From Schizochytrium sp. TIO01 (Eukaryota; Protista; Bigyra: Labyrinthulomycetes), in NCBI GenBank assembly GCA_004764695.1, contig SMSO01000012.1, forward strand, positions 1 through 60,536: 60,536 bases of DNA. Reading direction: 5' to 3'. Shown one piece after another: positions 3 through 58,082 of the stretch. A model generated the notes under the pieces. The model worked only from the letters and a program-made list of their open reading frames with translations, had not been told where the DNA came from and ran no database searches. Every line of letters starts with the position of its first letter. Within the stretch, counting starts at the first letter, position 1. The position numbers and the translations under genes are program-made.

Positions 3-604
3 AATCGCGATGGTATTTTGCGTCGCCTCACTACCTATGAGCCGGACGAGATCTTGGAGGCAATGCAACACATTGCAGCAGCAATCTCTCTTGCCAGAGA
101 ATCACGAGACCGAGACAGAATTTAAGAATGGTGAGGTTTCAAAGAAAACGCTCTCGATGTTATCGTTTGTTCGGTCTTCTCGCAAGGTCGAACCTAAAAG
201 ACGTTCTCGGATCTGAGGTTTCGCCACCTCCTCTAAAAGGTCTGGTAAACATGCCACTCTCAGTGTATTCTGACTTTTTAAAGGAACTTCAGAGCATCGA
301 GCTGCAGCCCACAGACGAGCCAGACTCTATCCTATTGACCTCACCTTTCGAGTCCGGCATTGCGCTTATTCCAGGCAAGACCAAACCTGACGGAACACCA
401 GTGTGTCATCTTATTGATATTTACTCGATGCCGATGGGTTACTATCACAGCATACTTACAGCCAAAGACCTCGAGGAGAACGACGGTCAGCTTGTGAAAA
501 AAATGATGTCCACCAACATTGAACTCATGTGGAAACTTGCACTTCAAGATGACGCCTTGCAGGATCCTGCTATGGCGTATGCGTCTTTGAACTCAGTACC
601 ATAA
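3..604 (+). pseudogene. 3' end of a 12th bZIP-cluster paralogue (C-terminal domain only, cut by the window edge); apparent frameshifts in the first ~200 bp
   Basis: ORF 128..604 'SGIALIPGKTKPDGTPVCHLIDIYSMPMG...DLEENDGQL' matches the family C-terminus (copy 10897: 'GYTCVPCEPAIDGTPRCHVILIFSAMLG...QNGSL'). Frame 3 from nt 3 'NRDGILRRLTTYEP' matches 'DGVRRTIEPF/DGVKRTVEAF'. Frame 1 'SSRKVEPK' joins frame 2 'DVL' across an A-run near nt 197-200. Could be a pseudogene or indel errors. Confidence 0.75.
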
Positions 605-817
605 TTATCACTCCACACAACACCCCAGGAAAACCAATTACAAAGGAAGGCAAAATAATAGACTAGATTATTGTACGACCTCGTATGTGCACATTGGCTT
701 TTCCAACAATTGGACAGCTCTGGAATATAGCCCCCATCTTTATTTTCTGTAACAAATTAAGGCTTTGCATGAATCAAATTTAATATTGTATAATTTTTTA
801 GCTGACTTCTCATTTTC

Positions 818-1710: not shown

Positions 1711-1844
1711 CCTTGATCAGTTGTTTATTTTTGAAAATCGCGTAAGTCAAAGGTTGTGCAGACAGGCAGAGAGGTAGAAGAAGAAAGAGAGAAGAGAAGA
1801 GCTATTCTAATAGAGCTTGACGAGAGACATCATGGGACGAGTTA

Positions 1845-3560
1845 ATGAACCAAAATTTGACATTCAACAGACCCGAATCTAACTTTGACAAGATGGATCA
1901 GTCGGTTCAAGATTCGATTTATCGATTACCTAGTGTCAGGAATACAGAGCGAGATTGGATTTCTAATGTTGTTACTTTCATTGAAGATATAGAACCAGTA
2001 TATGCTTCAGATGCAGAACTCCGTGATGCTCCTATTTTTGTTGCGGAACGCTTCTTGCGCAATTTGTCTGCTTCTACAGAAGATCCTGAGTATTTTTTGA
2101 CCCTGAATGACGTTTTTCCCATGACTTTGAAAGACCGTATTGTTTGCCGGCCTTCGCCAACTTTTGACACTGACTTCCAGTATGTGATTTCCCCTCTGAC
2201 AGAAGGTTCTTTCGAATCGGTAGAAAGGTTTATTCGTGGTATCTATAATGGCGTTGGTAGTCCGCAGGTGATGGATCTTGAGACTTTTTTGACGCAAAGG
2301 ATCACAGACGGATTCTGTTACGCATGGTGTTTTCTAGTTACACATATGGTGTTTGCTCCAGTTGATTTTACTAATGCTAAATCCAAAGTAGGATTCAGAA
2401 GAGTATTTGGAGAAGCTTCTGATGAAACTTCTTTGCGTGACAGGTTTGACATCACTGCCAAAAGTTTTGAACCTACTCTTCTTTTCGATCGATTTGTGAA
2501 TTTCCAAAATTGTTCAGGCGAATTTATGGGGCAAACTTTGTTGCGCTTCGCTAGTTTTATTGCTAAATATGATTAAACTGTCACTCGGGAACTTGCTGTC
2601 TTTGGCGATCCGATAGAATTTGATGAGGGTGACTCTAGAACATTATCTGAAGCGCTCATTCCTGTCCGGCTGACTTCATTGATAAGTCCTTACTTTGAGC
2701 ATGTTGAAATTTTATCGACTAGAATTCTATTACTCTGGGAAATGCTGTTTCCCCCCCCCCCAAATGTAATCGATATATTGTCTCATTCAGTCCGCAACGA
2801 TTCAGTTGAAGCTCCATGGTCCTTGTCTCGTTATGCACAAATGGTCATCGTCATAGGTCAGCATGCTAATGCTCTATTGTACTTGATGCTTTCTCCGCGA
2901 AAGAAGCAATTTTGTATTCAATTTACCTCCGTTAGTCTCTTGCAGCGCACTCCTATCGATGAAAGTCTTGATCGAGAAATTGAAAACTATGGTAAGGGTA
3001 AATGGAAGAGACAAGTGTTAGATGTGAAACAATTGATTCCAACTAGTTCAATAGTTACTGGTTTTACATTGAATTATGATTCCTCGAAATTAACCACTAT
3101 TGAGCGTCATTTCCTTTCCATTTTATTGCAAGTTTGGTTGTTTTATATTGTTCACATTTTGAATCCTCAAGTCGATGGTGGGAACTTGTTAGAAATGGAA
3201 AAGTTGAAATATGCTTTTAAAAAGGCGTTTAAATCAGACAGATTTAAGATGCTCTATAGGTTCAGGAGAAGTGCCTTTTCAATATATAGTGAAACAATTC
3301 ACTTTATGAATTCACTAAGGTTTAGCTGCTGTTGCGATTGCTACAGCTACTACTGTTCTGCTTATCCTGCTGCTTGGCATAATCATGAATGTCCGCTTTC
3401 CAAAATCAGTTCATCGAGGTTGGCAGTCACCCGCACTAGGCTATGCACACCTACGATAGGGGCCCACCAAAATGCTCAAAGGCTGATGGTCCATAAACAG
3501 TTGACAATGTTGAACCACTCATGCATATATGCATTCGCCCTCCATCCAATCGCGATTTGA
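1845..3560 (+). pseudogene. Hypothetical protein gene interrupted by one in-frame TAA (2574-2576)
   Basis: ORFs 1845..2576 and 2679..3560 share a frame, and the 34 codons between them (TVTRELAVFGDPIEFDEGDSRTLSEALIPVRLTS) are open. No recognisable domain. Confidence 0.55.
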
Positions 3561-4405
3561 TTGGTTTTATGGTCACAAAGTATGCGCAGTGTATTGAGCT
3601 CTTTTGAAGAGTTGGACATGCCAGTAGTTACTAATTAGCTCCTTAATAAAATCACTGTACCCACACCAAGGCTCCTTCTATCTGGGGTTGTAAGTAAGTT
3701 GGCAAAACCAGCTGTTGCCTCCTCCAGGCCAAGTCTCGATGAGCTTTGTCTTCAAAGAAATCAATGCTTGCTCTCTCGAACTCCTCCAGCGAATGCTGTC
3801 AGTTTCTGAATTACAAATGAACAAAAAAAATGGACGAAGAATACTTGTTGATTTCGGTAGAATACAGGAAAAAGTGGTAGAATAAATGAACAATTAAATG
3901 AACGTGCTTCACAGAACACGCAGCAAACCAAATGACACTTTTCTTCTAGTGCGTTTTTTATTGAAGCAAACCTGGTTGACACTTGTCGTGAATAAAGCAC
4001 GCGTGAGAGAGTGTCCTTGGCCTGCGGTGAGGCTGTAGATGTTACTGGTAATTTGTTTTCAAGTGGTCCCATACCGTCTTGGTTTGACCTTGTTTTAGTT
4101 TTGCCTTGTGAGCAAACTCTTGTTCTTTCTATAAAACTATTGTTTTACATAGAAAGGTGGTATATATAAAAATTTGATGTGCTTATGTTACAAAAAGAAT
4201 TTCAATAAAAGTTCATCGCAGCGCCAAAGCGGGATCTCTCTCTCCAAGCAACTGTTGTAGGACATTCTCGCGAGCAGCTTGCTCGCTTGCTGAAGCACTT
4301 GCAGATCCTTGCTAGTCTGTGTGCAACTGGAGTGAGGCATGAGCAAGCAAGGCCCTGCTGCGAACTGTTTATCTTGCAATAGCAGTGGCAAAGGTCTCGG
4401 CAACA

Positions 4406-6040
4406 ATGCAGCGGGAACAGCAACAGCGGGAGCAGCAACAACGACAGCAACGTGCAGCAACGAGCAGCAACGGCAGCAGCAACAGCATCAGCAGTCAGAG
4501 CTTTGTTGCGCTAGGGCAGCCCTGGCCAGCGAAAACATATAATTCATTTACGAGAATGGTGGGCCTGAATGAAGGCGAGATTGGAAAACAGGTCATTGCG
4601 GAGATTGAGACAGGCGTGCACATGCCGGAATACTTCAGGCCTCACGCTGATGATGATGGGGAGCACTCGCACGAGAAACTACAACATACGGGCCTCCAGT
4701 CTCTTTTTGCAGGAAATCAACCTGAGGCTACAAGCCACGATTCCGACGAGATCAAATGGTCTAAACTCAATGGAGACATCGACGGATTGTTGAGAGCAGA
4801 TCTTGGCGCCCAAGAAACTCCTGTATCTTCGAAAGTATCAGATTCGCGCAATGCAGATGCATGCCGTCGTAGTCGGCTTAAGCGAAAAGCTGATATCAAA
4901 GACTTAAAACATCGCAACGCAGAATTAGAGAGACGAAGAGAAATATACTTAGAGCGAATTGCACAGCTTCAAGTGGAGGTTGACGCGCTAAGACATGCTA
5001 ACTGTATTGACGTCGCAAAAGAAAATGAACTTCTCCGCGCTGAGATTGAGAGACATAAAAATTTCATCTCGCGCATCATACATGCCATGGATGAGGCACC
5101 TAATATGGTTCCTGAGGAGAGAGTTCGGCTCTTGAAAACAGGTATCGAAAGTGCGCAAAGTCAGGTCATAGGCATGCTCTACACGTCTACTTGTTGGCAG
5201 CCCATCTCACCAATCAAACTAAATGGAGGTGTTGAAATTCTTTTCTATTATCAATTTTTACCTGTAAATGCGGCTCCTCATGAAATAAAGCGATGGAACA
5301 TGCGCTGCGAGATTTATAATATCAATGTCCCGCCAGCTTATTTAAATTCTGAAGCATGGAAGAAATGCGGCGATCTTGAAACCCTTCGAAGGCTAGAGAA
5401 AGACCGTTCCAGTCTCGATGGGGTTCGTCGAACCATCGAACCGTTTCTGGCTCCGGCGTTCCAAGAGGCCCGAGATATGCTCCCGGGCCATCTTGAAGCA
5501 TTTCAAATAACTGAAAAGCATCCTCTCTCGAAGCGTTTGCCTTCTGGTGTATATCCTCCAGATGCGTCTGTTCTGCGCTTTTGGGTTGCCGCCACAATGC
5601 GTGAAAATGAGGTGTACCCTCGTTCATTCATATGTGCAGAAAGATCAAGGTCAGATTGTGTGAAGACCATTTCTGCGGAGTTTTCTGATCAGCCTATCAA
5701 ATGTAAGATTACGACCTATACAGAAGTTGGGCGAGCGTTGGTGAGCGCAGGCATTGTTCCTTCGCAAAAGGACGTCCCGAACGTTCGTCATTTAAACTCA
5801 TCGGCTCTCTCAGGGCATATCGTCATCCCGTCCAAGCAGGGGGCGTCATGCCATGTAATCTCTGTCGGGTCCGTTCCCATTGGTACTTTGGGTACAATCG
5901 GAAAGCCAGAGAATCTGGTCAATCATGATGGCTCTCTAACGAAATCTTGCTTAGAGCATCTTCGTTTTCGCACCAAGCTTTACTGGGAGGATAGCATAAG
6001 AGTTGCGCGTTTGCGTGCGCAAGACGGCGTATTACAGTAG
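4406..6040 (+). CDS. bZIP transcription factor with putative START/SRPBCC-like C-terminal domain (copy 1)
   Basis: Basic region RNADACRRSRLKRK, heptad leucines, 'KENELLRAEI' and the family C-terminal motifs. First in-frame ATG is 4406; alternative ATG at 4556. Confidence 0.9.
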   Translation: MQREQQQREQQQRQQRAATSSNGSSNSISSQSFVALGQPWPAKTYNSFTRMVGLNEGEIGKQVIAEIETGVHMPEYFRPHADDDGEHSHEKLQHTGLQSLFAGNQPEATSHDSDEIKWSKLNGDIDGLLRADLGAQETPVSSKVSDSRNADACRRSRLKRKADIKDLKHRNAELERRREIYLERIAQLQVEVDALRHANCIDVAKENELLRAEIERHKNFISRIIHAMDEAPNMVPEERVRLLKTGIESAQSQVIGMLYTSTCWQPISPIKLNGGVEILFYYQFLPVNAAPHEIKRWNMRCEIYNINVPPAYLNSEAWKKCGDLETLRRLEKDRSSLDGVRRTIEPFLAPAFQEARDMLPGHLEAFQITEKHPLSKRLPSGVYPPDASVLRFWVAATMRENEVYPRSFICAERSRSDCVKTISAEFSDQPIKCKITTYTEVGRALVSAGIVPSQKDVPNVRHLNSSALSGHIVIPSKQGASCHVISVGSVPIGTLGTIGKPENLVNHDGSLTKSCLEHLRFRTKLYWEDSIRVARLRAQDGVLQ

Positions 6041-10896: not shown

Positions 10897-12303
10897 ATGT
10901 TTGCGAATGGCTATGAGGAACGCGTGGGCGTGAGGGACTACGTTTTCGCTGCTCTGGATGAGTCAAGTGCCATCGCCTTCCTCGACGATCCCTGGTTGCA
11001 CGCTGCGAGACCAGAGGATGCGGCAAGTCGATCGTCAGGAGCACACAGCAAGTCTAGCAGCGAAGATGCTTCGGGACTCACGAGTTGTGTGCAAATTGGA
11101 AATGCTGAGGACGATGACATTGACCTTGGTGGTACCCAAGGTGATAGGCAAAAACGTAATGCAGAGGCCTGCCGGAAAAGTCGCCGGAAACGCAAAGCTG
11201 CAATGGAAAATCTGCGTAAACGCAACGAAGAACTAGAAGAGGCTCGTGACGTCTATCTCGAGCGCATTGCAGAGCTGCAGCTCGAGCTCGGGTCGCTTCA
11301 ACACGGAACTAGCGTGGACATCGCTCGGGAAAATGAATTGCTTAGGGCCGAGATCAACAAGCATAAGGCATCGATTGCGAGAATCTTAAGAGCCACACAG
11401 AAAGCCCCAGAAATGCTGCATGAAGAACGAATCAGGCTCCTAGAAACCGGCATTGAAAATAGTCTTGGGCAAATCCTTGGACTCACACACGTATCTTCAG
11501 GATGGCCAATGCTGCCTGTGTACAAGTCAGACCTCGGCATCGAGGCATTTGCACGACAGCAGTTCTTTCCGGAAAACGTGCCTGTTGACGAAATGAAGCG
11601 CTGGAGTGCTCGAATCGACTTCTGTAATTTGCCTGTCGAGGCAAGAGATCTTCATGAACAACTCTGGAACGCAGAAATTAATCCTGAAGAAAAGAAAAAA
11701 ATCCACGAGGGTGATTGGTGTGATGGTGTAAAGCGTACTGTCGAGGCATTTCCCGTGCTTGACAACCAGCCCGATATCAGGAGGGCTTTTGGAAATCGGC
11801 TGGTGTTTACCAAGTATACTGAAACCGCTGCAGATGACCCTGGCCCAACTGACTTTATCACCATGCGTTGCAGTAACACAAGGGCAACGAAGGTCCTCGT
11901 ACCACGCGCGATCCTCCCAGACGATCAGGAGTGTCTTCCCTTGCAACAGGTATATGATGAGCAGCCTGAGGGCACGCGCAGTTGTTATGTAACTTCAACA
12001 ACAGAATTCACCAAAGACTTGCTTCGCGCAAGACTTTTGCCGACCGTCAATGATTATTCAAAAACTGGTCTCATCTGGGGATACACCTGTGTTCCATGTG
12101 AGCCTGCCATCGATGGCACCCCGCGCTGTCACGTCATTCTCATCTTCTCTGCAATGCTTGGCCACCTGAGCCACATGGATGGTGCGGAACATCTAATGCC
12201 GCAGAACGGATCTCTCCCGCCAAACTGGGAGCGTTTCATGGACTATAATGTTGCTGCAATTCATGATCGAGTCTCAAAGGTGTTTGAAATTCATCAGATG
12301 TAA
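10897..12303 (+). CDS. bZIP transcription factor with putative START-like domain (copy 2)
   Basis: 468-aa ORF with RNAEACRKSRRKRK, zipper and conserved C-terminal domain. Confidence 0.92.
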   Translation: MFANGYEERVGVRDYVFAALDESSAIAFLDDPWLHAARPEDAASRSSGAHSKSSSEDASGLTSCVQIGNAEDDDIDLGGTQGDRQKRNAEACRKSRRKRKAAMENLRKRNEELEEARDVYLERIAELQLELGSLQHGTSVDIARENELLRAEINKHKASIARILRATQKAPEMLHEERIRLLETGIENSLGQILGLTHVSSGWPMLPVYKSDLGIEAFARQQFFPENVPVDEMKRWSARIDFCNLPVEARDLHEQLWNAEINPEEKKKIHEGDWCDGVKRTVEAFPVLDNQPDIRRAFGNRLVFTKYTETAADDPGPTDFITMRCSNTRATKVLVPRAILPDDQECLPLQQVYDEQPEGTRSCYVTSTTEFTKDLLRARLLPTVNDYSKTGLIWGYTCVPCEPAIDGTPRCHVILIFSAMLGHLSHMDGAEHLMPQNGSLPPNWERFMDYNVAAIHDRVSKVFEIHQM

Positions 12304-13279: not shown

Positions 13280-13469
13280 CTTGGCTCTTGGCTTTGGGAA
13301 AGAGCAGGAGCATTTAAACAGTACTGATTAGGGTGCAATGTGTAAATTCTTTATTAGGGTTTCTGGTAGAATTTGCTAGCATGACGAATAGAGAAGAATC
13401 GCGTGCTCGTTCACAGCACGTTCTACCTTGCCAAAGACTAAACAAAGAACTTGACAACTACTTTTGATC

Positions 13470-14999
13470 ATGGGAGACCTTCACGCACTCGACAGTCTAC
13501 TTTCTCAGCCCAACTTGAGCCCTCAAGAAGTCTCGTGGCGAGGCATGCAGAATATGAAACACGTATTAACGCCACCCTTGCCCCAAGATGAAGATGGCAC
13601 CAGACTCATCGACTTCTCGCAAACAGATCCTCTCTTAATTGAGGGTGATCTGGATGGGTTTTGGGACAATGATTTCGCAAGTGACATCCCCATCTCAAGA
13701 CAGCAGAACTCAGCACCAGTGATTGCACCAACTGCAACGAGACTCAGGGGATACATGGTACCAATACCGAAAACCTCATCTGAAGAAAAGGGCCACAACG
13801 TGCCAATCAAAGTCGCACAGAATAATGAAGGCAAGAACAATGATTCGTGTACCACATTGGCTGCAAGTAAGCGTAATGCTGATGCGTGCCGTCGCAACCG
13901 GCTAAAACGCAAGGCTGACGAGGATAATCTTCGCAAGAGAAATGAAGAATTGGAGCAGAACCGGGGTTTCTTTCTTCATCGCATCGCAGAACTGCGATTT
14001 CAGGTTGATGTTTTACGCATGGCAGGTTCCGTTGACTTGCGCAGAGAAAATGATCTTCTTAGGGCTGAAATAAGGAGGCACAAAGCTTATCTAAAGGATG
14101 TGGTGCAAGTAGTAAAAAAACATCCTCGTATCTTACTTGAAGAGAAGGCGAGGCTCCTGCAGTCGTGTCTTGACGACTGCATGTCACAAGTAATTGGTCT
14201 TACATATCATTCAAGGCAGTGGGCTCGGCTCCACACAATTCGTCGTGGCAACCTTTCGATGAATATTTACTATGATATGCTACCCAAAAACGTTCCTCTT
14301 AGTGAGGTAAAGCGGATCAATCTTAGATACGAAGTTTTGAATGCTCCTGCTTCTGCAAAAACCTTTCACCACGTTTTGAGGATGTTCGACGACAACAATA
14401 CGCAGAACAACCGATTAAAGGAGATTGCTGAAGCAGAAGTATGCTCACGCTGGCAGGTCAATCAACTCGTATCTCCTGAACTTGAAGAGACCCTTGCTGT
14501 GTTGTCTCCTGAAGGCAATGTACAGATCTCCACCTATTCTGAACATCAAGATGATAAGGCCCGGATACAAACAACGGTGATTGCCTGTTCTTTGGAGGAA
14601 AGAAAGAAGCTTGTACCTCAAGCCCTTTTTGAGAAACATGAGGAAGATATTGTGAGGTGTAATATTATTGAACGCATGTCAAGTGAAGTTGTGCCTGTTT
14701 ATATGCACGGGATGACGAATTGTGACAAAGAGTTAGCACATGCGAGGATTCCCTTTCAAACTAGTGCAGAGGTGAACTTCACCAAGGGCCATATAATTGT
14801 TCCCCATCCTGACGATCCGAACGCATGTCACGTGATTGCCGTTTCAACAATCCCAATTGGCAACTTTCCTAAGCTCCTCTCACCGAGCGATTTTATCACA
14901 GAAGATGGTCGGTTGGCCGATGCGTATGCTCGTCTATCGGCTCAACAATTTGATTTTTTTGTTGAAGAGATGGCTTCATATAATGAAACAGTGGAATAA
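13470..14999 (+). CDS. bZIP transcription factor with putative START-like domain (copy 3)
   Basis: RNADACRRNRLKRK plus zipper. ATG 13470 aligns with the N-termini of copies 4-6. Confidence 0.92.
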   Translation: MGDLHALDSLLSQPNLSPQEVSWRGMQNMKHVLTPPLPQDEDGTRLIDFSQTDPLLIEGDLDGFWDNDFASDIPISRQQNSAPVIAPTATRLRGYMVPIPKTSSEEKGHNVPIKVAQNNEGKNNDSCTTLAASKRNADACRRNRLKRKADEDNLRKRNEELEQNRGFFLHRIAELRFQVDVLRMAGSVDLRRENDLLRAEIRRHKAYLKDVVQVVKKHPRILLEEKARLLQSCLDDCMSQVIGLTYHSRQWARLHTIRRGNLSMNIYYDMLPKNVPLSEVKRINLRYEVLNAPASAKTFHHVLRMFDDNNTQNNRLKEIAEAEVCSRWQVNQLVSPELEETLAVLSPEGNVQISTYSEHQDDKARIQTTVIACSLEERKKLVPQALFEKHEEDIVRCNIIERMSSEVVPVYMHGMTNCDKELAHARIPFQTSAEVNFTKGHIIVPHPDDPNACHVIAVSTIPIGNFPKLLSPSDFITEDGRLADAYARLSAQQFDFFVEEMASYNETVE

Positions 15000-15776
15000 A
15001 TGAATTGTGAAACACATAATATCAATAAATGTTAAATTACACAAACGTTTTCTTGAAAGCCACAAACTAAATAGATTTTCTGTAGAACAAAGGTTTATTA
15101 TCTTCTAAATTCTTATTCGACGAATAGCTTGCAAGCCATTTTGGCAACCTCCTCGCGATACATGAAACACGTATTCCTATGCAATGCGTGTGGATCCCAT
15201 TCTTGATTTTCAAGATGGTACGTTATTCCTTTTTCCATGAATTGCATCGAGCTCACGCTATTCAAATAGAGCTACCATCAATTTGATCTAGGACAGCACC
15301 ACGAAGCCCTAAGCTTCTTTCATATGCATTTTTTTTTTCCCTGTACATATTGCTGGCATAATCCAGGAAGGGTACTGAAGTTGCATATAAAAACCCAAAT
15401 TAGGAAATATAATTATATGTGCATCTCATCTCACTTCGTGGAGTGCTGGCCACAGAAAAAGAATGCAGCGATCATGTTGTACCGGAAATCTTTTAATACA
15501 TGGAGCTCAAGTCACCTCCTAAACCTAAACTGCTCAGATATGGCACTGTTATTATGTTACATTTTTTTTTCTCTTATGAATGACCTCTTGCTGATATTTC
15601 CGAAATTCTGCAGAGCACGTCATTCTATAATTCTTTACAACATTCAACTTCTTACAGTTTGACCCTTCGCACATCTTATCATTTATTCCAGGCAGGTACC
15701 ATATTATTCGTGTTTACTTCGACTCCAAAACTCAGACTATATCTTGGCTATCCCTTGCAAAATACCATACTTGCAG

Positions 15777-15859
15777 CCGCTGCGTGTTGAACTATATGTA
15801 ACCATGTGTAGCACCACCGTAAATACACTGGACAGTCCATTTGGACACACTTTGATTAT
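15777..15859 (+). promoter_or_regulatory. Conserved upstream element of copy 4 (CCGCTG-N10-TATATGTAACC..TAGCACCA..TAAATA..TTTGATTAT)
   Basis: Blocks are shared with the copy 3 and copy 6 upstream regions; ~150 bp before the ATG. Confidence 0.5.
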
Positions 15860-15943
15860 ATGAATTTAGTATTGATCTGGCAGTATGGTTAGTCCCTTCC
15901 TCTTTACCAACTCAGAGACAGCAAACTCTATCGCAGATCCGTG

Positions 15944-17500: not shown

Positions 17501-18482
17501 TTCTTCTGTTGCTTCCTATTTAATGCCCTTCTTAAATGTGCTCTCATCAGTTCAGTTAATGCACTCCTTGGAAGATTGTTTCCATTGAACTCATCCTTGT
17601 ATTTGTGAGCAAATCATCGGATTGATATTACAATCATAAATGATAATAGATTTTCAATTTCTGCATGTAGCAAGGTTCGCGTTTCGCAGATGTAAGGGAT
17701 TCATCGTTAAAGCTATTGATATTATAGCTGAGGTTTGTGCCACTTTTTAAAATTCGTTTTATAGTTGTGGTTGCATGCCTCTCGCTTCAAATCATGATAT
17801 CATTAGGAGTTGAACAGCTTAATCTAATTATTCAGGTATATTGAGGAATTAGCTGATCAAACACTCCGGGTGATTTTGTACAAGATTGATATCTGGTGAG
17901 TCTGTGGAGTCAATTTCTTATGCTTTGCATAGAAAGCACTTCTGAGCTAAGAGGCGTCTCATAAGCTATTGTTTCCTTCAATCTTGCAAAGTTACGCTCT
18001 TACTAAATAAATTGTAGCTACTGGACAAGAGAAGCGTCCAGAGCGCTGAGACAGACTTGTGACCCTTGAACTCTCTTGGTCTAATCGTTTTGAAATTGAT
18101 GATAGTTTTAATTTTTAACTACAAGTTTGCTCGCTCCATTCTCCTTTTCTGATGGTCATTGTTTCAGCTTCAAATTTAGCAAAAGTCTTCCTTTATTCGT
18201 GCATTTTAACTTTTTTCTACCTGTTTCCTTGCAAATTTATCACTTCAGTTTCTTCATTTGTGTAACTCCATGTCGTATACTAATTACTAAACCCCTTGGT
18301 TTGATCACATTCTTCTGGCCATTTACGAACGATTTGGATTTCTTAAACAATTTCAGTGTATTACTTTCTATAGTAAATAATAGTAATAGTAAGTGTGTAC
18401 AATTACAATAGTATCAACATGCACATCAAGTTGACTGTAGCACTGGAACAGAAAAGAATCAATCTCGAAGTGAGGAACCACA

Positions 18483-40307: not shown

Positions 40308-40375
<68 letters not shown>

Positions 40376-40376
40376 G
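40307..40376. repeat. (GTT)n microsatellite
   Basis: Perfect trinucleotide run. Confidence 0.95.
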
Positions 40377-43354: not shown

Positions 43355-44875
43355 ATGCACAGAGAAGGAGAAGAGAATGAAGAGGGCGAAGCTGGAAACC
43401 AAAGCGTCCTGGAGAGTGACCAGGGCCTCTTGCAGTTCTTTTGGGGGCTCGCCAGTCCACCTGGCGCAGACCAGAAAGATTCGGACGCTGATGATGGCAA
43501 CAGCGACGAGGAGAACGACAGCGTGAATAAGAAGGAAGGCTACGATGACGACAAAGAAGGCGTAATTAGCCATGATCAACAATCTTCTAATGTGGAACAT
43601 ACTAGTTTGCACGAAGGCAGCCACTCTGTCGAAAATAGCATTTCAAATGACCATAGGAAAGGTGAAAGTGGAGATGTCCTGGCAGACATTGCGAAAACGA
43701 CCACAGAAAGCCTGCAAAGTAAGCCTTTAGAGCTTCATCCAGGAGAAGATGACGACTCAAAGAGATTCAAACGCAAAGCCAAATGGAGGAATTTAAGTGC
43801 AAGAAATGAGGAGCTAGAGTCCTTAAGACCAGTCTATCTCAGACGCATTGCAGAGCTCGAACAAGAGGTTGATGCATACCGTATGGCGGGTGCAATCAAC
43901 CTTCAAAAGGAGAACGAACTTTTTCGAGTTGAGATCTTTAAACATAAGGCTTTCCTTGCTAATGTCACGCAAGCCATTCAGGACACTACAAGATCTCTAC
44001 AAGCAACTAATAGTGAGCATCTTCGATTGATCACTGAAGTCATTAACTCAAGTATATCTCGCATTGTTGGGCTGGTGCACATGTCTACACAGTGGCAACG
44101 CTTTGATGAAATAGACCACGAATCTGGTTTGAAAATGGCTGTCTCCCTTGAGTTTCTCCCCCACGGCGTGCTTCCTCGTGAGTCCAAACGTATTAATATG
44201 CGATATGAAATTTTGCATGCTCCTGTCTCCGCAGACAACCTTCATCAAATCTTGATGTCGTTTTGGGGAAACCAAGATAAAGTGAGGAGTCTGTACAGTG
44301 CCTTTGACGTCTCTTCCACCTATCAAGTGAACTATATACCGATGGAGTCTCCTAGTTTAGATGAAGCAAGGAAATCACTTGGGGGGGATACTATACAATT
44401 AATCAGGTTCAATGAAGAGAGTGCGACGGGCATCGTCACAGACTCGCTATATACTACCTGTACATCATCACGTGACCTTGTGCCGCAATCATTTGTCGCA
44501 TGTGGAAATGACGAAGCTCTTAAAGAGGAAATCAACTCGACGATAGATCCAGGCATTGCAAATTGCCAAATATTCGCTAGCATCTCAGACGACGACACGA
44601 AATCTCTTGCAGAAGTTGATATTGAGTCTACACTGACAGGCAAATTCTCTTTTGGCCATGTGGTCGTCCCCACGCATCATGCTAAGGACCTTTCGCATAG
44701 CATTATGATATTTTCTGTTCCCATGGGTTCCTTTGAAGCTATGCGAGACACAAGCGACGTTCTACAAGATGGAGGTGGGCTTCGAGGAACGTTTTCGGCA
44801 GCCTTCCACGGACACATGGAGATTTTCGCTCAGGAGATTTTATCTTTCACGGAAAATGCAGCAGCGACCGCATGA
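43355..44875 (+). CDS. bZIP-family paralogue with degenerate acidic basic region (copy 9); putative dominant-negative dimer partner
   Basis: Zipper and C-terminal domain are intact and most like copy 8. The basic region reads PGEDDDSKRFKRK instead of NAxxCRxxRxKRK. Confidence 0.88.
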   Translation: MHREGEENEEGEAGNQSVLESDQGLLQFFWGLASPPGADQKDSDADDGNSDEENDSVNKKEGYDDDKEGVISHDQQSSNVEHTSLHEGSHSVENSISNDHRKGESGDVLADIAKTTTESLQSKPLELHPGEDDDSKRFKRKAKWRNLSARNEELESLRPVYLRRIAELEQEVDAYRMAGAINLQKENELFRVEIFKHKAFLANVTQAIQDTTRSLQATNSEHLRLITEVINSSISRIVGLVHMSTQWQRFDEIDHESGLKMAVSLEFLPHGVLPRESKRINMRYEILHAPVSADNLHQILMSFWGNQDKVRSLYSAFDVSSTYQVNYIPMESPSLDEARKSLGGDTIQLIRFNEESATGIVTDSLYTTCTSSRDLVPQSFVACGNDEALKEEINSTIDPGIANCQIFASISDDDTKSLAEVDIESTLTGKFSFGHVVVPTHHAKDLSHSIMIFSVPMGSFEAMRDTSDVLQDGGGLRGTFSAAFHGHMEIFAQEILSFTENAAATA

Positions 44876-52073: not shown

Positions 52074-54164
52074 ATGGCTTCGGGGGTTCCGATAGTGGCG
52101 TGGGAAGCCCTCGTTGCTGATGACGACGGCAGCAACTGGCGCACGGGTTTCCTTAACACGATCGTCGACGACGGCCCAAACGGAGAAGACCAGCGAGGCG
52201 AGCAACCCTGCCACGACCAGTCTCTTCATGAAACAAACAGACCTGCGAGGACTATAGGCAACAGCCAGTGCGAGCTTGTCACCCTTGGCCGCAACGCACG
52301 GAACATTAGTGACAGTCACAGCAGCAGCTTGCCGGAAACACCAGTGTTTTACCATAACGAAGAGGGCAGCGCACAAGATGGGTACTATGGCGCTTTTGGA
52401 ATACCCCCAAATCAAATGGGCTGTAGCAGTGTAATGGATGCGGACGAATCTACTGCAACCGGTGCCCTTGAGGGATTTGAGACTCGGATCAGGTCCATTA
52501 ATGAGTCAAAGTTCGAGGCTAAGGCCGTCAAAAAGACGAAGAACTTGAAAGAAAAAACTTGTTTATCTACACAAGGATCTGCATTTGAGCAGCTCAATGG
52601 ACAAAAGAATTTGTCTGCAATTGAGATGAGAACAAAAATTGGTATCAAAAGAAGAAGAACTGCATTCAAAAGAAGCAGTAGCAGCAACTCGGGGCGAAGA
52701 TGTGGTGACGGATTCAAATATCAAGGTGATGATAGTGAGGACGACGCCGAGGACGACGCCGAGGATGATGAAGACGATGATGAGGAGCATGGAAGCGCAA
52801 AGGTTGGAAAATCCAAGCCAAAACGTGTGAACAACGCTGAATCGTGCAGAAGGAGAAGACTTCGACGCAAGGCAGATGAAGCGTCGCTGAGGCGCAACGT
52901 GACGAAACTTGAGAGCGACCGCGAATTGTATTTGATGAGGATTGCGGAGCTTCAACTGGAGGTGGACTCCCTGCAAATGTCATGCGAAGTGAATTTACAG
53001 CACGAAAATGATCTTCTGAGGACTGAAATTGCGACACACAAATCATATGTAGCTAGAATTGTCCAGGCGATCTCGAAACAGCCTGGGATGCTAGTTGAAG
53101 AACAGATACGACTAGTCTCCGCTGCCACTAACGATGCAGTTGCACAGCTCACAGGCATGGTTCATGTTTCACTTGCATGGCCTCTAGTTTATGCTAACCA
53201 ACACCCAACAGGTATGGAAATGCAAGTCTATATGGACTTCCTACCAAAGATGGTCTCTACTCTTGAGAAGCAACGAATCAATATTCGCTTTGAGATTTAT
53301 AACGCACAACTTTCTGCCGAAAATCTTCACACCTGCCTATCGCAGCTTTGGCTTGCCAACGATCACTTCCCGCCCCTGCACGGCGCAAGGCTGCAATCGT
53401 CACCGGCATCGCCTTGGCAATTTTCGAACCTTTCTGCTTTTGATACAACTGTTGGTAGAATCAAGAACAGTAAAACTAGCCTGATGAAATGCTCTCGAGA
53501 TCTTCTTCCTAGAGCATCAAGTCCACTCGAGTTCACATTAGCAACCTCTCTCACCCGGTCTGATCTCGTCCCATCCGCCTTTGTTATCAGGCGCCCCGCG
53601 GGAAATTACCCCCAAATCGCTCAACAGTCTTTGTTCCAAACGGTCGACTCCACACTGTCACACCATGCAAATAAGGTCACTCTACCAGGTAAATTTGGAG
53701 CTTCAAATCAACCTTCGAAATTGCAAGCGCGATCTCTGCAGCAACCAATGCAATCAAAGCAACGGCAAAACCCTTCTTCCACGATGATATCTAAAGTAAA
53801 TTCGTCAGGAGCAAATCGGCAAGCTCAACTGCAATTGGTGGAGCCTGGTGTTGTGCGCTGTTATATCCATGCAAGCTTATCATGCGATAAAGAATTAGAA
53901 CGCGCTGGAGCGATAAACACCAGTACACTGCAAAGCAAGGTTGTTTTCGGCCACGTTGTAACGCCTGGAGCTAACCCGACTGTCTCGCATTCTGTTTCCG
54001 CCTTCTCTTATCCTCTAGGAGCCTTTTCGGATTACTTGTCAATGGACCAGGTTGTGAGACCAGACAATTCGCTGACAGATCTCAGCCGTCAAGTTTTCAC
54101 TGCTCACTTTGGGCGCATTGCACAAGAGATCTTCTATTTCACAGATTCGATGCAGTGCACATGA
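52074..54164 (+). CDS. bZIP transcription factor with putative START-like domain carrying a Q/S-rich insertion (copy 10)
   Basis: 696-aa ORF with NNAESCRRRRLRRK plus zipper, and an acidic tract before the basic region. Confidence 0.92.
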   Translation: MASGVPIVAWEALVADDDGSNWRTGFLNTIVDDGPNGEDQRGEQPCHDQSLHETNRPARTIGNSQCELVTLGRNARNISDSHSSSLPETPVFYHNEEGSAQDGYYGAFGIPPNQMGCSSVMDADESTATGALEGFETRIRSINESKFEAKAVKKTKNLKEKTCLSTQGSAFEQLNGQKNLSAIEMRTKIGIKRRRTAFKRSSSSNSGRRCGDGFKYQGDDSEDDAEDDAEDDEDDDEEHGSAKVGKSKPKRVNNAESCRRRRLRRKADEASLRRNVTKLESDRELYLMRIAELQLEVDSLQMSCEVNLQHENDLLRTEIATHKSYVARIVQAISKQPGMLVEEQIRLVSAATNDAVAQLTGMVHVSLAWPLVYANQHPTGMEMQVYMDFLPKMVSTLEKQRINIRFEIYNAQLSAENLHTCLSQLWLANDHFPPLHGARLQSSPASPWQFSNLSAFDTTVGRIKNSKTSLMKCSRDLLPRASSPLEFTLATSLTRSDLVPSAFVIRRPAGNYPQIAQQSLFQTVDSTLSHHANKVTLPGKFGASNQPSKLQARSLQQPMQSKQRQNPSSTMISKVNSSGANRQAQLQLVEPGVVRCYIHASLSCDKELERAGAINTSTLQSKVVFGHVVTPGANPTVSHSVSAFSYPLGAFSDYLSMDQVVRPDNSLTDLSRQVFTAHFGRIAQEIFYFTDSMQCT

Positions 54165-56489
54165 CCAAGTCCTGATCTGGGATGAATCTCTTTCCTTTCA
54201 TGAACTTTGTTTTCAATCCGCAGTTGTGTTGTTCCGCCCGTTTTGTTCAACATTTTCTCGTTTGCCTCAGAACTAGAAATTAATACAGGGAAAGGGTAGC
54301 CAAATGCTGTGTTTTGGTTCTCGTATCTACGATTCTGAAAGTGTGTTGTAAATTTTGTTGGATCTCTCGGAAAGGGTATGCGGTCACCCCACGAGCGGAG
54401 AGCCCTTCAGAAGTTTCGATTTTGGCCTTTGCTTTACATTTATGTATTAGAAATCTATTTGCAGATTAAGTTTAGCGTTTGAAGTGGTCAGACAAAGAGG
54501 TCTTTTCCATAGAAAACACAGACTTTCTTCTTTAGAACTCCAAAACATAGAAGCAACCCAAGTTAACATATTGTGAATATTTTTTGTTACAGGATAGGCT
54601 TTTGTCTGTCGTAATGGTTGGTTGCCACTGTTAGGGATCCCAGGAGCTCGATCCGAAAAGACACTAAGAGTGGCGCCGGCGAGAACATGCATTTTGGGGT
54701 ACACCAAGATTGCCTTTGTGGGGGAGCAACTGTGTTGTCTTTATTTGCAATCTTTCTCATGGATCCTTGATAGTTGCCTACATGCCGATATAGTTTCCTG
54801 GTTATGGAGCGAGCTCTGTAATGTGGATAAAATTATGGGAATATAAGCTGCCAAGATTTTGCTTTATCTTCTGTTTGCTCCTAGTGATCATGTAGATCAC
54901 GCTAATTCGTCAAAGGGAGGAGAGCAAAGAAAGACTGATCATGGAAGGAGTCCATGTTTGTATGGTAGTGTATGATGGGGAAATATTATCGTGTATCCAA
55001 TGTTAAGCGCAGCACAATAGCTCTGCTCCTATATTAGATGTGATCAATCGCGCCATTTTCGTTATCTTCACTATCTTCACAACTGCCGGTAGTGTGTTGC
55101 ATGTAGACCAGATGAGTTAGGTACCAACCGTTTCATCATTGTTCAAGATATCTAAAAGAAAATGTCTACTTTACCTGGCCTCATTGAAATCAGACTTTCT
55201 CGTGTCACTTTTGGTAGACGATAATCATGCCCGCATTCATTTCCATCGCGATTGTGAACCGCGAAGATGATAACAGCTATGAAATGTTTCATACAGGTGT
55301 CAGGTTCACGATACAGAGCCTACCATCCCGATGTTGCCTTATGTATTTTAAGAACTGGTGTTCTATGCTGGGAGTTAATTCTTCTTGAACTTAAACCAGA
55401 AATATTTTATTTCAAAACAAACACCAATTTCATTTTCCCCTGGTCTATTTTCTCGTTATTCTCAGGGACTATATCTTTATTTTAGTTAAAATGCACCATA
55501 TTGTATTTATAGTTAATATATTCCTATCGTAAAATGACGGTCTCACTTTTAAATTCCCTAGCCTGGCAGGTTGAAAACTCTCGTTGGTGAAGAGTGAAGA
55601 GCTCTGAGGAGGTTAATCTTAAAACCCTTTTACTTGCTCTCAATCATCGCTCGAGGTTTGTACCGTCGAATGCTCTTCTTTCGTAAATAGGATTTGTTCG
55701 TTTTACAAAACATGAAGGCTTGAACCAAAAGGGGTCGCACCTCGCTTTCACTTCTCCAGCATCCTTTGACGTCTTGCATTTGAGCTCTTGACGTCCGAAG
55801 CCATTTGCTCCCGGTGCGCTTCTTCGTCCGCGATCACTCTACATAGTTGGACTGTACACCCTCATCCCATTAATGAACACTTGTATCGCCGCGTTCATTT
55901 GAAGTGCATTCCTGTCTCAAAGTAAAGGAGACTCCTCACACCAAGAAAAAAGGCAACCACGCGACTTTAAAAACCCTGTTGAAGTTTTTGCGCTTCGATA
56001 AAGCTGCCAGGTGCCCTAAAACTCCATCTTCAAACCCTGAAGATGTCTACATCCTACCAACATCAAAGTATCCGAGTACTGTAACTTTAAAATAAAATAA
56101 TTCAATATAATAAAAAACATATAGAACGAGGAGCATATGGAAAAGTGTAAGAAAAAAGGGCCAGACTCGCAACGGAGATCTCCCCGATGCGCTCGTCGCG
56201 ACCGCGACCGCGGCCAGAGCCGCCCCATGCTCATCAAGCACCTATTTCAGTTTCCTCTTCATCTCAGTGGCCTGAATTGTGGCCGATGGCAGCAAGCGGA
56301 CACGCCACACGCGCCATGCCAAGGTTCACGACACCTAGACCGCCGTTCCTGCCCGCGGTGATGCAGCCGGGGCCACCCCAAAGCTATCCCGAATTCCAGC
56401 AACATGCTCTAAACGGCCACGCAGGGCTGATGCACCACTGAGTACCTTGGTACGGTCCTCCTATAGTGGCAGAAACCCCAGGAATCGTC

Positions 56490-58082
56490 ATGAAACATTA
56501 CAACGGAGGCAGCAATGTTGGCGTTCATAACGAGAACTTGAAAGCAAACGTGACAAAGAAACGAAGAAACTCGCCGAAAAGGTTGGCGGAGACGCATCGA
56601 ACTCCGAAAAGAAGGCGACCAGGAGACTATAAATGTATTGTGGATGCAGAGTTCTTACCGACTTCGGAATCTATGACCTGGACGACCTCTCCAACAGGGC
56701 TCAATTTGGGCCCTTCGAAGACGAAAGCGATTCCCGAAACAACGATAAGGGAAAGAAAACCAGAAACAACAATAAATCCGACGTTACCCTCAAAAGCGAA
56801 AAAGTCGTCATATTCTGTGTCTAGAAAAGGACAGGAGATGAATAAAGTGAAAAGGGAGATAACGAAAACGGTGAACTCACGAAATGCTGAAGCTTGCCGC
56901 AAACAACGTGAGAAGCGTAAGGAAGCTGAAAATGAGCTAAGAAAAGCGAATCAAGAATTGGAGGAGTCACGAGAGCTTTATCTTAGGCGCATTGCGGACC
57001 TTCAGTTTGAGGTAGATGTGCTTTCACTGGGATGCCCTATGGATCTAGTTCAACAGAACAAATTGCTGCGTAAGGAAATTCGGATCTACAAGGCAGTACT
57101 TGGCGATATTAAGAATGCTGTTGTGGATCATCCTGGTATACTTGTAGAAGAGAGTGTACGCTGCTGCAAAGGTATTATAGAAAGCTCGCAAACACAGGTC
57201 TTAGGCATGGCATGCACCTCTCGCACATGGCCACATTTATGCACAATTAGCTCATTAAATGGGATGCCCATGCGCATATCCGCTGAGCTATTACCTAAAC
57301 ATGTTGCTCACAATGAGGTTCAACGTGTTAACCTCCGTTATGAGGTCCTAAATGTTCAAGCGGAGGCATCGGATCTGCATGTGCTACTACAAAAGTACTG
57401 GCTCAACGAAGTTCTTGCTCACACCATTGACTCCACACGTGGTGCCTCACACGTGCAGAATGGCGACAAGATCCCTAACAGAGAGAAGCCTCCTCAAATG
57501 AATGAAGCAAGGAAGATGCCTATAACTTGGCGGTATGAAGAATTGGACGCTGACGCAATATTAGGCCGCGAAGTCCGGTCTGTACTCGTAACTGATAACT
57601 TGCGTCTCTTTGAAATTCAGGAGCACCATCGTGGAGTAGCAAATGGCAATTCACCCATCATGACGTCCAGCAAAAAGCTGAGATTCCAACCTGATGTCCT
57701 TTCATGTCAATCTACAAACAGCTTTGCGAACGCTCGCAAGACTCATGAACCTGCACAGATTCTTTCATCTGAAGAAAGCTCCTTTATTTACAGCAGCATG
57801 TCTTGCGCTGCAGAGTTGAAAAAAATCAATATTCCCATGAAGAACACTCTGGTGTCTAAATTTATTCATGGGCATATAACGATACCAGCGCCTTCTTTGA
57901 AAGGATCCCCTAGGTCTCATTTCGTTGCTGTGTTTTCGCTTCCTGCTGGAGAGTTTGCAATCATGCGATCTCTTCGGGACATGATCAACCCAGATGGTTC
58001 TGTAACCGAACCGTACAAGCATATTTTTCATGCGCACCTGGACTTTGTCGCTAATCAAGTTCCACGGCTCTCAAAAAAATAG
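56490..58082 (+). CDS. bZIP transcription factor with putative START-like domain (copy 11)
   Basis: RNAEACRKQREKRK, zipper and C-terminal domain. ATG 56490; the same frame extends back to ATG 56187 across a single TGA (56439-56441). Confidence 0.9.
   Translation: MKHYNGGSNVGVHNENLKANVTKKRRNSPKRLAETHRTPKRRRPGDYKCIVDAEFLPTSESMTWTTSPTGLNLGPSKTKAIPETTIRERKPETTINPTLPSKAKKSSYSVSRKGQEMNKVKREITKTVNSRNAEACRKQREKRKEAENELRKANQELEESRELYLRRIADLQFEVDVLSLGCPMDLVQQNKLLRKEIRIYKAVLGDIKNAVVDHPGILVEESVRCCKGIIESSQTQVLGMACTSRTWPHLCTISSLNGMPMRISAELLPKHVAHNEVQRVNLRYEVLNVQAEASDLHVLLQKYWLNEVLAHTIDSTRGASHVQNGDKIPNREKPPQMNEARKMPITWRYEELDADAILGREVRSVLVTDNLRLFEIQEHHRGVANGNSPIMTSSKKLRFQPDVLSCQSTNSFANARKTHEPAQILSSEESSFIYSSMSCAAELKKINIPMKNTLVSKFIHGHITIPAPSLKGSPRSHFVAVFSLPAGEFAIMRSLRDMINPDGSVTEPYKHIFHAHLDFVANQVPRLSKK

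Follow-up and report, generated by a model that had tools for sequence, protein, structure and literature searches.

The DNA analysed here (the window) is a complete contig of 60,536 nt from a thraustochytrid (Aurantiochytrium-like) genome that contains exactly 12 loci of a single gene family, as found by tblastn with the 11 long ORFs as queries and by a search of all six frames with the family HMM. This is the number given in the initial annotation, which had described a 12-member bZIP array. Eleven of the 12 copies are uninterrupted ORFs of 468-772 aa, and only w09 lies on the minus strand. No second recognisable gene was found in the window besides these paralogues, in agreement with the claim that all long intact ORFs belong to one family. 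The gaps between the copies hold microsatellites and low-complexity ORFs without Pfam matches, and one of them contains a stop-interrupted pair of ORFs (1821-3557). By sequence or prediction, each of the genes is intronless and monocistronic.

Copy 1 (3-604, on the plus strand as are all copies described below except w09) is the 3' part of a bZIP-START gene that is truncated by the contig end and broken in frame. Frame-shifting indels lie near positions 75, 101 and 196 when compared with its intact allele on contig C7 (C7:333296-334726, a frame of 477 aa), and in-frame homology extends from about 197 to the stop codon at 602-604. Copy 2 (w02; 4385-6040) encodes 551 aa from a GTG or 544 aa from the first ATG (P0013), with the bZIP at 4844-5071 and the START-fold domain at 5072-6037; it has an MMETSP transcript and an orthologue in Hondaea (P0017). 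Copy 3 (w03; 10897-12303, 468 aa), with the bZIP at 11152-11379 and the START-fold domain at 11380-12300, corresponds to the MMETSP/JGI protein P0008 and the Hondaea orthologue P0006. Copies 4 to 6 comprise w04 (13464-14999, 511 aa; bZIP 13869-14096, START-fold domain 14097-14996), w05 (15941-17500, 519 aa; bZIP and second coiled coil 16355-16582, START-fold domain 16583-17497) and w06 (18483-20123, 546 aa; bZIP 18981-19211, START-fold domain 19212-20120). Copy 7 (w07; 21048-22661) reads 537 aa from a TTG or 517 aa from an ATG (P0002), its bZIP occupying 21513-21740 and its START-fold domain 21741-22658.

Copy 8 (w08; 32294-34612, 772 aa) has a long low-complexity N-terminus ahead of the bZIP (33485-33712) and the START-fold domain (33713-34609). 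The ninth copy by position, w09, lies at 36016-37569 on the minus strand (517 aa; bZIP 36916-37161, START-fold domain 36019-36915) and matches the MMETSP transcript P0010. It is followed by w10 (43355-44875, 506 aa; START-fold domain 43961-44872), the copy that the initial annotation had numbered 9. Copy 11 (w11; 52074-54164, 696 aa; bZIP 52827-53054, START-fold domain 53055-54161) carries a Q/S-rich insert of about 70 aa within the START-fold domain, and differs from its C7 allele by 0 synonymous and 11 nonsynonymous changes. Copy 12 (w12; 56466-58082) encodes 538 aa, with the bZIP at 56877-57104 and the START-fold domain at 57105-58079. A TGA at 56439-56441 of the window haplotype is Trp in the C7 allele and in the database protein P0011; the 631-aa form of w12 is therefore N-terminally shortened in this haplotype, and its bZIP and START parts are open despite the TGA.

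The window duplicates C7:334131-393841, with which it is collinear at 96-99% identity, and is therefore probably the second haplotype of that region. The array on C7 spans 85 kb (C7:320404-405630), with one pseudogene among 15 intact genes; for 11 genes, the alleles on both contigs are intact. Copy 1 runs off the left edge of the window, as the initial annotation had said of the array. Clustering in itself is an ordinary trace of tandem duplication.

Basic region, zipper and the variant copy w10

By their sequence, the proteins are of the bZIP type. All copies display the canonical spacing N-x7-R-x9-L-x6-L-x6-F/Y-x6-L-x6-L (in w10 without the Asn), in which the first heptad leucine stands nine residues past the signature Arg. 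The basic-region signature N-(A)-x-(A/K/S)-C-R-(R/K)-x-R is found in 10 of the 11 aligned copies; position 5 is a Cys in 10 of the 11 window copies, and position 8 is variable. The zipper comprises five heptads with a core that is nearly identical across the copies (a = N-R-I-V, d = L-L-F/Y-L-L), the 'd' positions being L19, L26, F/Y33, L40 and L47 in every copy with the exception of w10, which has a Y at 47. A short second coiled coil follows the heptads and leads into the C-terminal domain, and the N-terminus ahead of the bZIP is variable and, by sequence or prediction, disordered. The register of the basic signature, the correct spacing of the heptad leucines, the Asn at an 'a' position and the mostly attractive g-e' pairs are shared with ATF/CREB, GCN4 and AP-1. 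In contrast to canonical bZIPs, position 5 holds Cys rather than Ala, position 8 N/S/Q/R/K rather than Cys/Ser, an 'a' position an invariant Arg and one 'd' position an aromatic residue; past the zipper, the copies continue with the second coiled coil and a globular domain of 300 aa.

The bZIP profiles (PF00170/PF07716), which the initial annotation had proposed to run, recognise the family in part. The bZIP_2 cut-off is exceeded by the full-length protein of copy 1 (P0007; 25.4 vs 22.3 bits), by w02 and C7:321301 when all six frames are searched, and outside the C7 array by the C33 pair and C30:9415650, but most window copies stay below the Pfam bZIP cut-offs when scanned alone as whole proteins; for w02 itself, the six-frame search gave 24.5 bits and hmmscan 20.7 bits. 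A search with nothing but the C-terminal profile gave 66 relatives, 21 of which have bZIP matches, down to E = 3e-8. A comparison of the family profile with PDB sequences gave weak matches, mostly to bZIPs (ATF-2, ATF-4, GCN4, Jun, CREB and Fos), with the basic region in register. The family accounts for about 28 of roughly 40 bZIP-like loci of the genome. The proteins probably bind DNA as zipper dimers; the upstream regions of the genes have no enrichment of a shared promoter motif or of a canonical bZIP site.

In w10, HPGEDDDS (43733-43756) takes the place of the first half of the basic region; the signature reads P-G-E-D-D-D-S-K-R and lacks the Asn, while the zipper and the START-fold domain are retained. 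The segment is identical in the C7 allele and in the MMETSP transcript P0125, and the loss of the N-terminal half that had been noted for this copy is confirmed. The near identity of the zipper cores allows cross-pairing, and it is a real possibility, short of probable, that family members do cross-pair. More tentatively, w10, without a functional basic region, might then poison its partners. A homodimer prediction for w05 (two copies of residues 135-519) gave a score of 0.22 (mark 0.32).

The C-terminal domain and its predicted START fold

The C-terminal domain is common to all copies, as previously claimed, but measures about 300 aa and not the ~270 aa given. Its assignment as START-like, also made in the initial annotation, is upheld by two independent high-confidence models, both of which are predicted to adopt a START fold. 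The AlphaFold model of w05 (pLDDT 85.3, pTM 0.85) has top Foldseek matches that are all START domains, and superimposes to the START domain of ACOT11 with a Z of 16.0 over 197 residues at 2.9 Å (VIA) and to CERT with a Z of 14.2. For w03, the most divergent copy, modelled with a different alignment from that of w05, a model with pLDDT 90.4 was obtained, with Z values of 16.4 to the ACOT11 START domain and 15.6 to CERT. For w05 and w03, the best 12 structural matches are all START domains, followed by a step down to generic SRPBCC folds at Z <= 8.9, and for w05 at Z <= 8.8. The two models have the same topology, consisting of alpha1, beta1-3, alpha2-3, beta4-9 and a long C-terminal helix, alpha4.

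The START assignment comes solely from the predicted fold. Pfam scans of the copies and their relatives gave no match to PF01852, and a genome-wide search with PF01852 identified seven other loci and no member of the bZIP-START family. The C-terminal profile had no match among PDB sequences, an hhalign comparison of the domain with the START proteins of the same genome returned a probability of 1%, and the ESM Atlas yielded no match for the domain. One face of strand beta3 bears a charged/polar motif, R-x-N-x-R-x-E, that is invariant or nearly so across the 11 copies of the window; at two of these positions, R74 and R78 (w03 numbering), the residue stays fixed or almost so in a set of 25 relatives at greater distance.

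Expression, divergence and relatives

Transcript evidence exists for at least seven copies, expression being a point raised in the initial annotation. MMETSP transcripts cover w02, w03, w09 and w10, and transcript-sized contigs fit copies 4-6, one gene each, without gaps or joints: 13444-15058 and 13456-15045 for w04, 15935-17632 and 15668-17665 for w05, and a contig from 18129 onward for w06. The RNA status of the runs behind these contigs is a guess; of the three taken to be RNA, X6 and X7 have holes between all three genes of copies 4-6, and X1 joins copies 4 and 5 in a single contig. In a DNA run of genome size the depth is even, with a short two-contig bubble as the sole break.

The 11 genes pooled have a pN/pS of 0.36 between the window and C7 alleles. 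Between paralogues the protein is conserved and synonymous sites are saturated (pS 0.8-0.87). The description of strongly diverged copies with 11 open frames stands. We conclude that the array is genuine and of old age, and that its genes are expressed and subject to purifying selection. Median pN over all paralogue pairs amounts to 0.32 for the bZIP part and 0.53 for the START domain, the closest pairs giving 0.09-0.19 and 0.25-0.36, respectively; mean column identity is 67% in the bZIP part and 34% in the START domain. The faster divergence of the START domain fits diversified inputs on a conserved scaffold for DNA binding and dimerisation, and it could also be simply a matter of weaker constraint.

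All named relatives are from labyrinthulomycetes. The four oldest members of the chromosomal array have one-to-one orthologues in Hondaea (SH-aLRT 99-100) that are partly adjacent, with neighbouring locus tags (094002/094012 and 095252/095272/095292). Hondaea retains part of the cluster, the subject of the synteny check proposed earlier, and part of the clustering is older than the Aurantiochytrium-Hondaea split. The remaining members form one strongly supported clade in which none of the sampled Hondaea sequences falls, as would fit an expansion at a later time; w07 groups with the adjacent copies 4-6 (SH-aLRT 100).

Relation to known regulators and alternative readings

The fusion of a START domain with a transcription factor is seen as peculiar to plants, where it is represented by HD-ZIP III/IV. 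These proteins have the same order of a DNA-binding domain, a dimerising zipper and a START fold, and likewise form multi-paralogue families. They differ in possessing a homeodomain in place of the bZIP basic region (no copy has a homeobox match), and HD-ZIP III proteins in addition combine START with dSTART/MEKHLA, whereas no MEKHLA domain is present here. The START part of the present family is without detectable PF01852 similarity, and its host is a heterotrophic stramenopile. An independent, convergent fusion is the most likely relationship. In HD-ZIPIII, the START and dSTART domains are lipid-binding and regulate how active the transcription factor is (10.1101/2025.07.29.667167; PMC11564692). 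There, too, a START-type domain was hidden from sequence methods.

Within the stramenopile supergroup, aureochromes (bZIP-LOV blue-light transcription factors) are the precedent for a sensor-bZIP (PMC13737086), that is, a bZIP with a C-terminal sensor of a small molecule or signal. Their sensor is of the LOV/PAS type and not a START fold; the present copies have no PAS/LOV Pfam match and no flavin-binding domain, and the named bZIP-START members, unlike aureochromes, are confined to labyrinthulomycetes. Nuclear receptors are alike in function only, in that a DNA-binding domain and a lipophilic-ligand pocket (putative here) are united in one dimerising polypeptide; their zinc-finger DNA-binding and helical-sandwich ligand-binding folds are unrelated and there is no homology. 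A literature search found no published description of the bZIP-START architecture, as stated in the initial annotation, which did not recognise a described system. We regard the array as a genuine and so far undescribed form of the sensor-fused transcription factor.

Taking the explanation as a whole, we consider it somewhat probable that the window is a haplotype of a tandem, labyrinthulomycete-specific cluster of transcription factors that act as DNA-binding dimers with a START-fold input. Judged by the predicted fold and by analogy to plant HD-ZIP III/IV, it comes close to probable that this domain is a regulatory input, most likely binding a hydrophobic metabolite and altering transcription factor function. 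The candidate ligand would be a lipid, sterol, fatty acid or carotenoid; its binding would change dimerisation, DNA binding, stability or nuclear access, and in cross-paired dimers a w10 subunit would make its partners inactive. A stronger version is doubtful, in which a labyrinthulomycete class of lipid- or sterol-gated bZIP-cryptic-START factors makes up the majority of the bZIP repertoire and cross-dimerises through a shared zipper, with differing pockets and half-sites and a DNA-binding-dead subunit included.

Rather unlikely, in our judgement, is a domain that binds no ligand and has been reused for protein interaction, second dimerisation, stability or localisation, the proteins then being ordinary constitutive bZIPs duplicated in tandem. 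Some helix-grip proteins do work through protein contacts, and the START likeness of this fast-evolving domain (34% mean column identity) resides in its fold, with no sequence signal and no match to a known ligand-contact motif. However, each of the 12 nearest matches in structure is a START domain that binds lipids or carotenoids, with an alignment of about 200 residues, the nine-strand sheet and long C-terminal helix that enclose the pocket are intact in both models, and the beta3 face is conserved in the 11 copies and, at R74 and R78, in distant relatives; buried polar residues are present in the pockets of some START domains.

It is improbable that redox is the main input, with oxidation of the position-5 Cys switching DNA binding off; FabR might, on this reading, be a family member. 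The Cys is present in 10 of 11 window copies, and a random thraustochytrid bZIP has a fair chance of membership because the family holds about 28 of roughly 40 such loci. FabR (Liu et al. 2024, PMID 38042223) is described in citing papers as a Schizochytrium sp. bZIP repressor of lipid and DHA synthesis that controls acl, fas and pks and binds DNA in a redox-dependent manner (PMC11122798). By that description it resembles the present proteins as a thraustochytrid bZIP. Against a redox input, the conserved 300-aa START-fold domain would be left unexplained. Redox and ligand mechanisms are mutually compatible.

That the array is an assembly artefact, a concern of the initial annotation, or a functionless graveyard of decaying duplicates has a negligible probability and is largely refuted: the small contig duplicates part of C7, copy 1 is frame-broken, w12 carries a nonsense change and C7 has one pseudogene, but two contigs that were assembled independently are collinear over the array, public contigs from several studies, of DNA and of transcript size, contain it, 11 of its ORFs are open on either contig although synonymous divergence is saturated, and transcripts and Hondaea orthologues exist.

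Industry uses thraustochytrids to make DHA, squalene and carotenoids. The transcriptional control of their lipid synthesis is barely known, the regulators cited being LipR and FabR, and about 28 candidate lipid-sensing regulators would be targets for knock-out, ligand fishing and strain engineering. If the stronger version given above is true, protists would have in this family their own equivalent of nuclear receptors and HD-Zip-START proteins, one by which the lipid state of oil-accumulating cells acts directly on transcription. An independent stramenopile fusion would be a second invention of the combination of DNA-binding domain, zipper and lipid pocket. The array would also offer a tractable system for how paralogue-specific START domains diversify regulons. 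START-type domains can escape sequence models and surface only in predicted structures.

Gene content of the window and the bZIP region

Twelve loci of the bZIP-START family were found in the window by a tblastn search with its 11 long ORFs, and the same 12 were recovered by a six-frame search with a family HMM, which revealed no weaker or degenerate family remnants in the window, large gaps included. Eleven of them are uninterrupted ORFs of 468–772 amino acids, ten on the plus strand and one on the minus strand (36016–37569). Copy 1 (3–604) is cut by the left contig end, and the array runs off that edge as first described. Indels near positions 75, 101 and 196 shift its frame relative to the intact allele on contig C7 of the same genome. 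These three frame changes (3–200) lie right at the contig end, and their cause may be either an error there or a broken allele.

The long ORFs are far apart in DNA with a GC content of 40–50%, and the intergenic gaps of 1–10 kb hold microsatellites and low-complexity ORFs. No Pfam domain was detected in ten gap ORFs of the window, and its Rfam and tRNA scans gave no match. The only other sizeable frames are two plus-strand ORFs of 251 and 327 codons (1821–2573 and 2577–3557) that share a reading frame, are split by a single TAA and have no Pfam match. The pair is broken on C7 too, by the same stop and by frame changes, and is probably a decaying gene of unassigned family, the sole non-family coding-like sequence in the window. 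Because the gap ORFs are of low complexity and the remaining pair is stop-split, the assignment of every long intact ORF to one family in the initial annotation is correct. The large gaps contain long perfect or near-perfect microsatellites, (GAAT)n, (TTTC)33, (CAAT)46, (TCT)45, (GTT)23 and (AGAT)56, at 24247–24451, 27408–27540, 27980–28162, 38472–38607, 40307–40376 and 59926–60149.

In the bZIP region, about 80 residues align without gaps in all copies, with a mean column identity of 67%. Ten copies carry N-A-x-(A/K/S)-C-R-(R/K)-x-R, where the signature Asn is position 1, followed by leucine positions 19, 26, 33 (Phe/Tyr instead), 40 and 47, which is the textbook bZIP spacing N-x7-R-x9-L-x6-L. 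The family departs systematically from usual bZIPs in having Cys rather than Ala at position 5, a variable residue (N/S/Q/R/K) rather than Cys or Ser at position 8, and an invariant Arg at one "a" position of the zipper. Scanned as whole proteins, most window copies fall slightly under the Pfam bZIP cut-offs. Full-length copy 1 (database protein P0007) exceeds the cut-off (25.4 versus 22.3 bits), as do copy 2, C7:321301, the pair on contig C33 and C30:9415650 in the genome-wide search. Among relatives gathered through the C-terminal domain alone, 21 of 66 have bZIP matches, the best at 3e-8. A profile of the region gives weak matches to PDB sequences, mostly ATF-2, ATF-4, GCN4, Jun, CREB and Fos along with a few unrelated coiled coils, and aligns the basic region in register with the PDB bZIPs. 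The Pfam evidence is mixed. From these sequence comparisons we accept that the family is bZIP, as had been proposed.

The zipper core is nearly identical across copies (a = N-R-I-V; d = L-L-F/Y-L-L), with g-e' pairs mainly Arg-Glu. No feature of these sequences forbids cross-pairing between copies, which is speculative. The fifth heptad is followed by a short break, M-A-G-S-I-D, and then by a further conserved amphipathic helix, K-E-N-E-L-L-R-x-E-I-x-x-H-K. The complex prediction for two copies of w05 (copy 5; residues 135–519) scored 0.22, the mark being 0.32, and counts neither way. Copies 4–7 share a short acidic-hydrophobic N-terminal motif, D-x-L-x-x-P-(E/D)-(L/M)-G-(F/L)-(D/E)-(D/E)-L-(S/T)-W-L (13476–13540, 15950–16015, 18490–18560 and 21110–21170), outside which their N-termini are unalignable; the motif may serve in activation or in binding a partner.

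The exception in the basic region is w10 (43355–44875), in which the first eight signature residues read H-P-G-E-D-D-D-S; this copy still has its K-R-F-K-R-K tail, zipper and START fold. C7 and an MMETSP transcript of a related strain carry exactly the same replaced segment. A fair reading of these sequences is that the canonical DNA contacts are lost; the inhibitor role initially suggested for this copy, acting as a dominant negative, is speculative. No w10 orthologue was found beyond this species complex, and the loss of the basic region is therefore evolutionarily shallow.

Fold and possible role of the C-terminal domain

The C-terminal domain comprises about 300 residues with a mean column identity of 34%. 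An AlphaFold model of copy 5, built on an alignment of 11 paralogues (pLDDT 85.3, pTM 0.85), shows the element order α1, β1–3, α2–3, β4–9 and a long α4. Its top Foldseek matches are all START domains, namely STARD10, the silkworm carotenoid-binding protein, CERT, MLN64 and StAR. A structure search of 48,161 chains, independent of Foldseek, aligned it to the START domain of ACOT11 (Z 16.0, 197 residues, 2.9 Å) and to CERT (Z 14.2). The first twelve matches are all START, and the next, at 8.8 or below, are generic Bet v 1/SRPBCC folds. The analysis was repeated on copy 3, which diverges most among the window copies, with a separate alignment of 25 mostly non-window relatives. This model (pLDDT 90.4) gave Z values of 16.4 and 15.6, with the same twelve START entries in the lead and the same drop after them.

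By contrast, all sequence methods were negative. PF01852 matched no copy or relative, and its genome-wide search returned seven other loci, none from the bZIP-START family. The domain profile had no match among PDB sequences, an hhalign comparison with aligned START proteins from the same genome gave a probability of 1%, and the ESM Atlas returned nothing useful for this domain. The START assignment is thus supported as a fold, on two models, and does not extend to membership of the sequence family. The two-domain architecture as first described is otherwise right. Strand β3 (copy 5, 16790–16822) has the pattern E-V-K-R-I-N-x-R-x-E, in which E70, R73 and R77 are invariant in all 11 copies and N75 and E79 nearly so. 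The alternating residues R-x-N-x-R-x-E would share one face of the strand and form a candidate polar site within the pocket.

We infer that the START-fold domain would provide the regulatory input of a DNA-binding dimer. The analysis shows the family's architecture, predicted fold, transcription, constraint and history; ligand sensing by the modeled domain and combinatorial pairing among copies are speculative. By analogy, the best precedent is the plant HD-ZIP III/IV proteins, in which a homeodomain and zipper precede a START and a cryptic second START domain, and whose START domains bind phospholipids and govern activity and nuclear access (10.1101/2025.07.29.667167; PMC11564692). The present family has no homeodomain and is not a member. 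Aureochromes provide a stramenopile precedent for sensors fused to bZIPs (PMC13737086); the family lacks their LOV domain and does not belong to them either. A second compatible input would be redox, through the conserved Cys of the basic region. The thraustochytrid bZIP FabR represses acl, fas and pks, with redox-dependent DNA binding, as reported in PMC11122798. FabR is the sole thraustochytrid bZIP found in the literature, where no description of a bZIP-START/SRPBCC fusion in labyrinthulomycetes was encountered. We rate the family among sensor-fused and START-containing transcription factors, this bZIP fusion being a variant of those. Its interest lies in an architecture convergent with that of plants and in its bearing on how industrial thraustochytrids control their lipids.

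Probable second haplotype, genomic array and age

The window is the complete contig C11 (60,536 bp) and is collinear with C7:334131–393841 at 96–99% identity. Coding identity is 98.9–99.7% and both contigs keep the 11 genes intact, so that C11 is most likely an alternative haplotype of part of C7 rather than a separate locus. The blocks of lowest identity coincide with microsatellite regions. An assembly artefact is excluded, since the stretch is present in public assemblies of both DNA and transcript size that come from ten studies, and the array is real as originally described. In copy 12, a TGA at 56439–56441 replaces the TGG (Trp) of the C7 allele and of P0011, a database protein of 631 amino acids. 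In the C11 haplotype, copy 12 consequently lacks its first ~93 residues unless translation restarts downstream; the TGA may represent either a genuine nonsense allele in a heterozygous state or an error of sequencing.

The C7 array is larger, with 15 intact genes within 320404–405630. Outside the window-equivalent part, a pseudogene of two short fragments (HMM positions 147–240 and 451–499) lies between intact members at C7:399307–400547. Two additional members on C7 (516064 and 594570) and those on C32 (five), C33 (two), C30 (three) and C4 (one) bring the family to about 28 distinct loci, out of about 40 bZIP-like loci in the genome. Distant members form two more tandem clusters, at C32:2453473–2470590 with 2527506–2529083 and at C33:2700509–2705411. 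Their Hondaea partners are P0022 for the C32 group and P0066 for the C33 pair, and the window's domain profile matches only part of the C-terminal halves of these members.

Among 1.84 billion representative proteins, only 105 match the domain profile with E ≤0.001. Nearly always, these are proteins of 450–600 amino acids with the domain located 150–300 residues in. All members named in 30 cluster look-ups are labyrinthulomycete (Hondaea, Aplanochytrium, Mucochytrium and MMETSP thraustochytrid transcriptomes); among named proteins, the closest are "BZIP domain-containing proteins" from Hondaea fermentalgiana, and near-identical proteins occur in JGI and MMETSP data. Metagenome contigs searched with one family alignment gave 599 pattern matches and no confirmed relative.

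In a maximum-likelihood tree, the first four array genes (C7 320404 and copies 1, 2 and 3) have one-to-one Hondaea partners with SH-aLRT values of 99–100. The remaining array members and C7:516064 form a single clade (support 100), within which the adjacent copies 4–7 make up a sub-clade. The Hondaea orthologues lie together on shared contigs, where their locus tags are neighbouring (094002/094012 and 095252/095272/095292). Judged by these tags and contigs, which are the basis for synteny here, the core of the cluster arose before the two genera separated, and the other array members look like a later local expansion.

Transcription and selection

Public contigs were aligned to window positions 13400–19399, which cover copies 4–6; that the transcriptome-sized runs are RNA is a guess. 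Two transcriptome-sized runs from different studies (X6 and X7) yield separate gap-free contigs at 13444–15058, 15935–17632 and from 18129 onward, each with its own depth, and leave the intergenic DNA bare or thinly covered. A third transcriptome-sized run (X1) has a single contig across copies 4 and 5. In a genome-sized run, depth is even throughout the stretch except at a short two-contig bubble (15438–15554). The separate contigs fit intronless, monocistronic mRNAs with very short leaders, and no spliced gene model was needed. MMETSP transcripts correspond to copies 2 and 3, the minus-strand copy w09 and w10; on these and the transcript-sized contigs, the family is not mostly unexpressed. 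In the 600 bp upstream of each gene, the sole words found were A-rich and no more frequent than chance, and palindromes of the ACGT-core, AP-1 and C/EBP types were absent; this search gave no evidence of auto-regulation.

Between paralogues, synonymous sites are saturated (pS 0.8–0.87), for which reason dN/dS is not estimable and pN is compared with saturated pS. Over all pairs, the bZIP part has a median pN of 0.32 and the START part one of 0.53; in the closest pairs the values are 0.09–0.19 and 0.25–0.36. Frames that stay intact despite this saturation imply purifying selection on the family, as judged from the coding sequences. Between the alleles of C11 and C7, the pooled pN/pS is 0.36 (46.5 synonymous and 57.5 nonsynonymous differences), away from the value near 1 expected of unconstrained copies. 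Unlike every other copy, the alleles of copy 11 (52074–54164 versus C7:385994–388072) differ by 11 nonsynonymous and no synonymous changes, with 12 gap columns. Relaxed or diversifying selection is a possible cause, as are alignment effects in the Q/S-rich insert.
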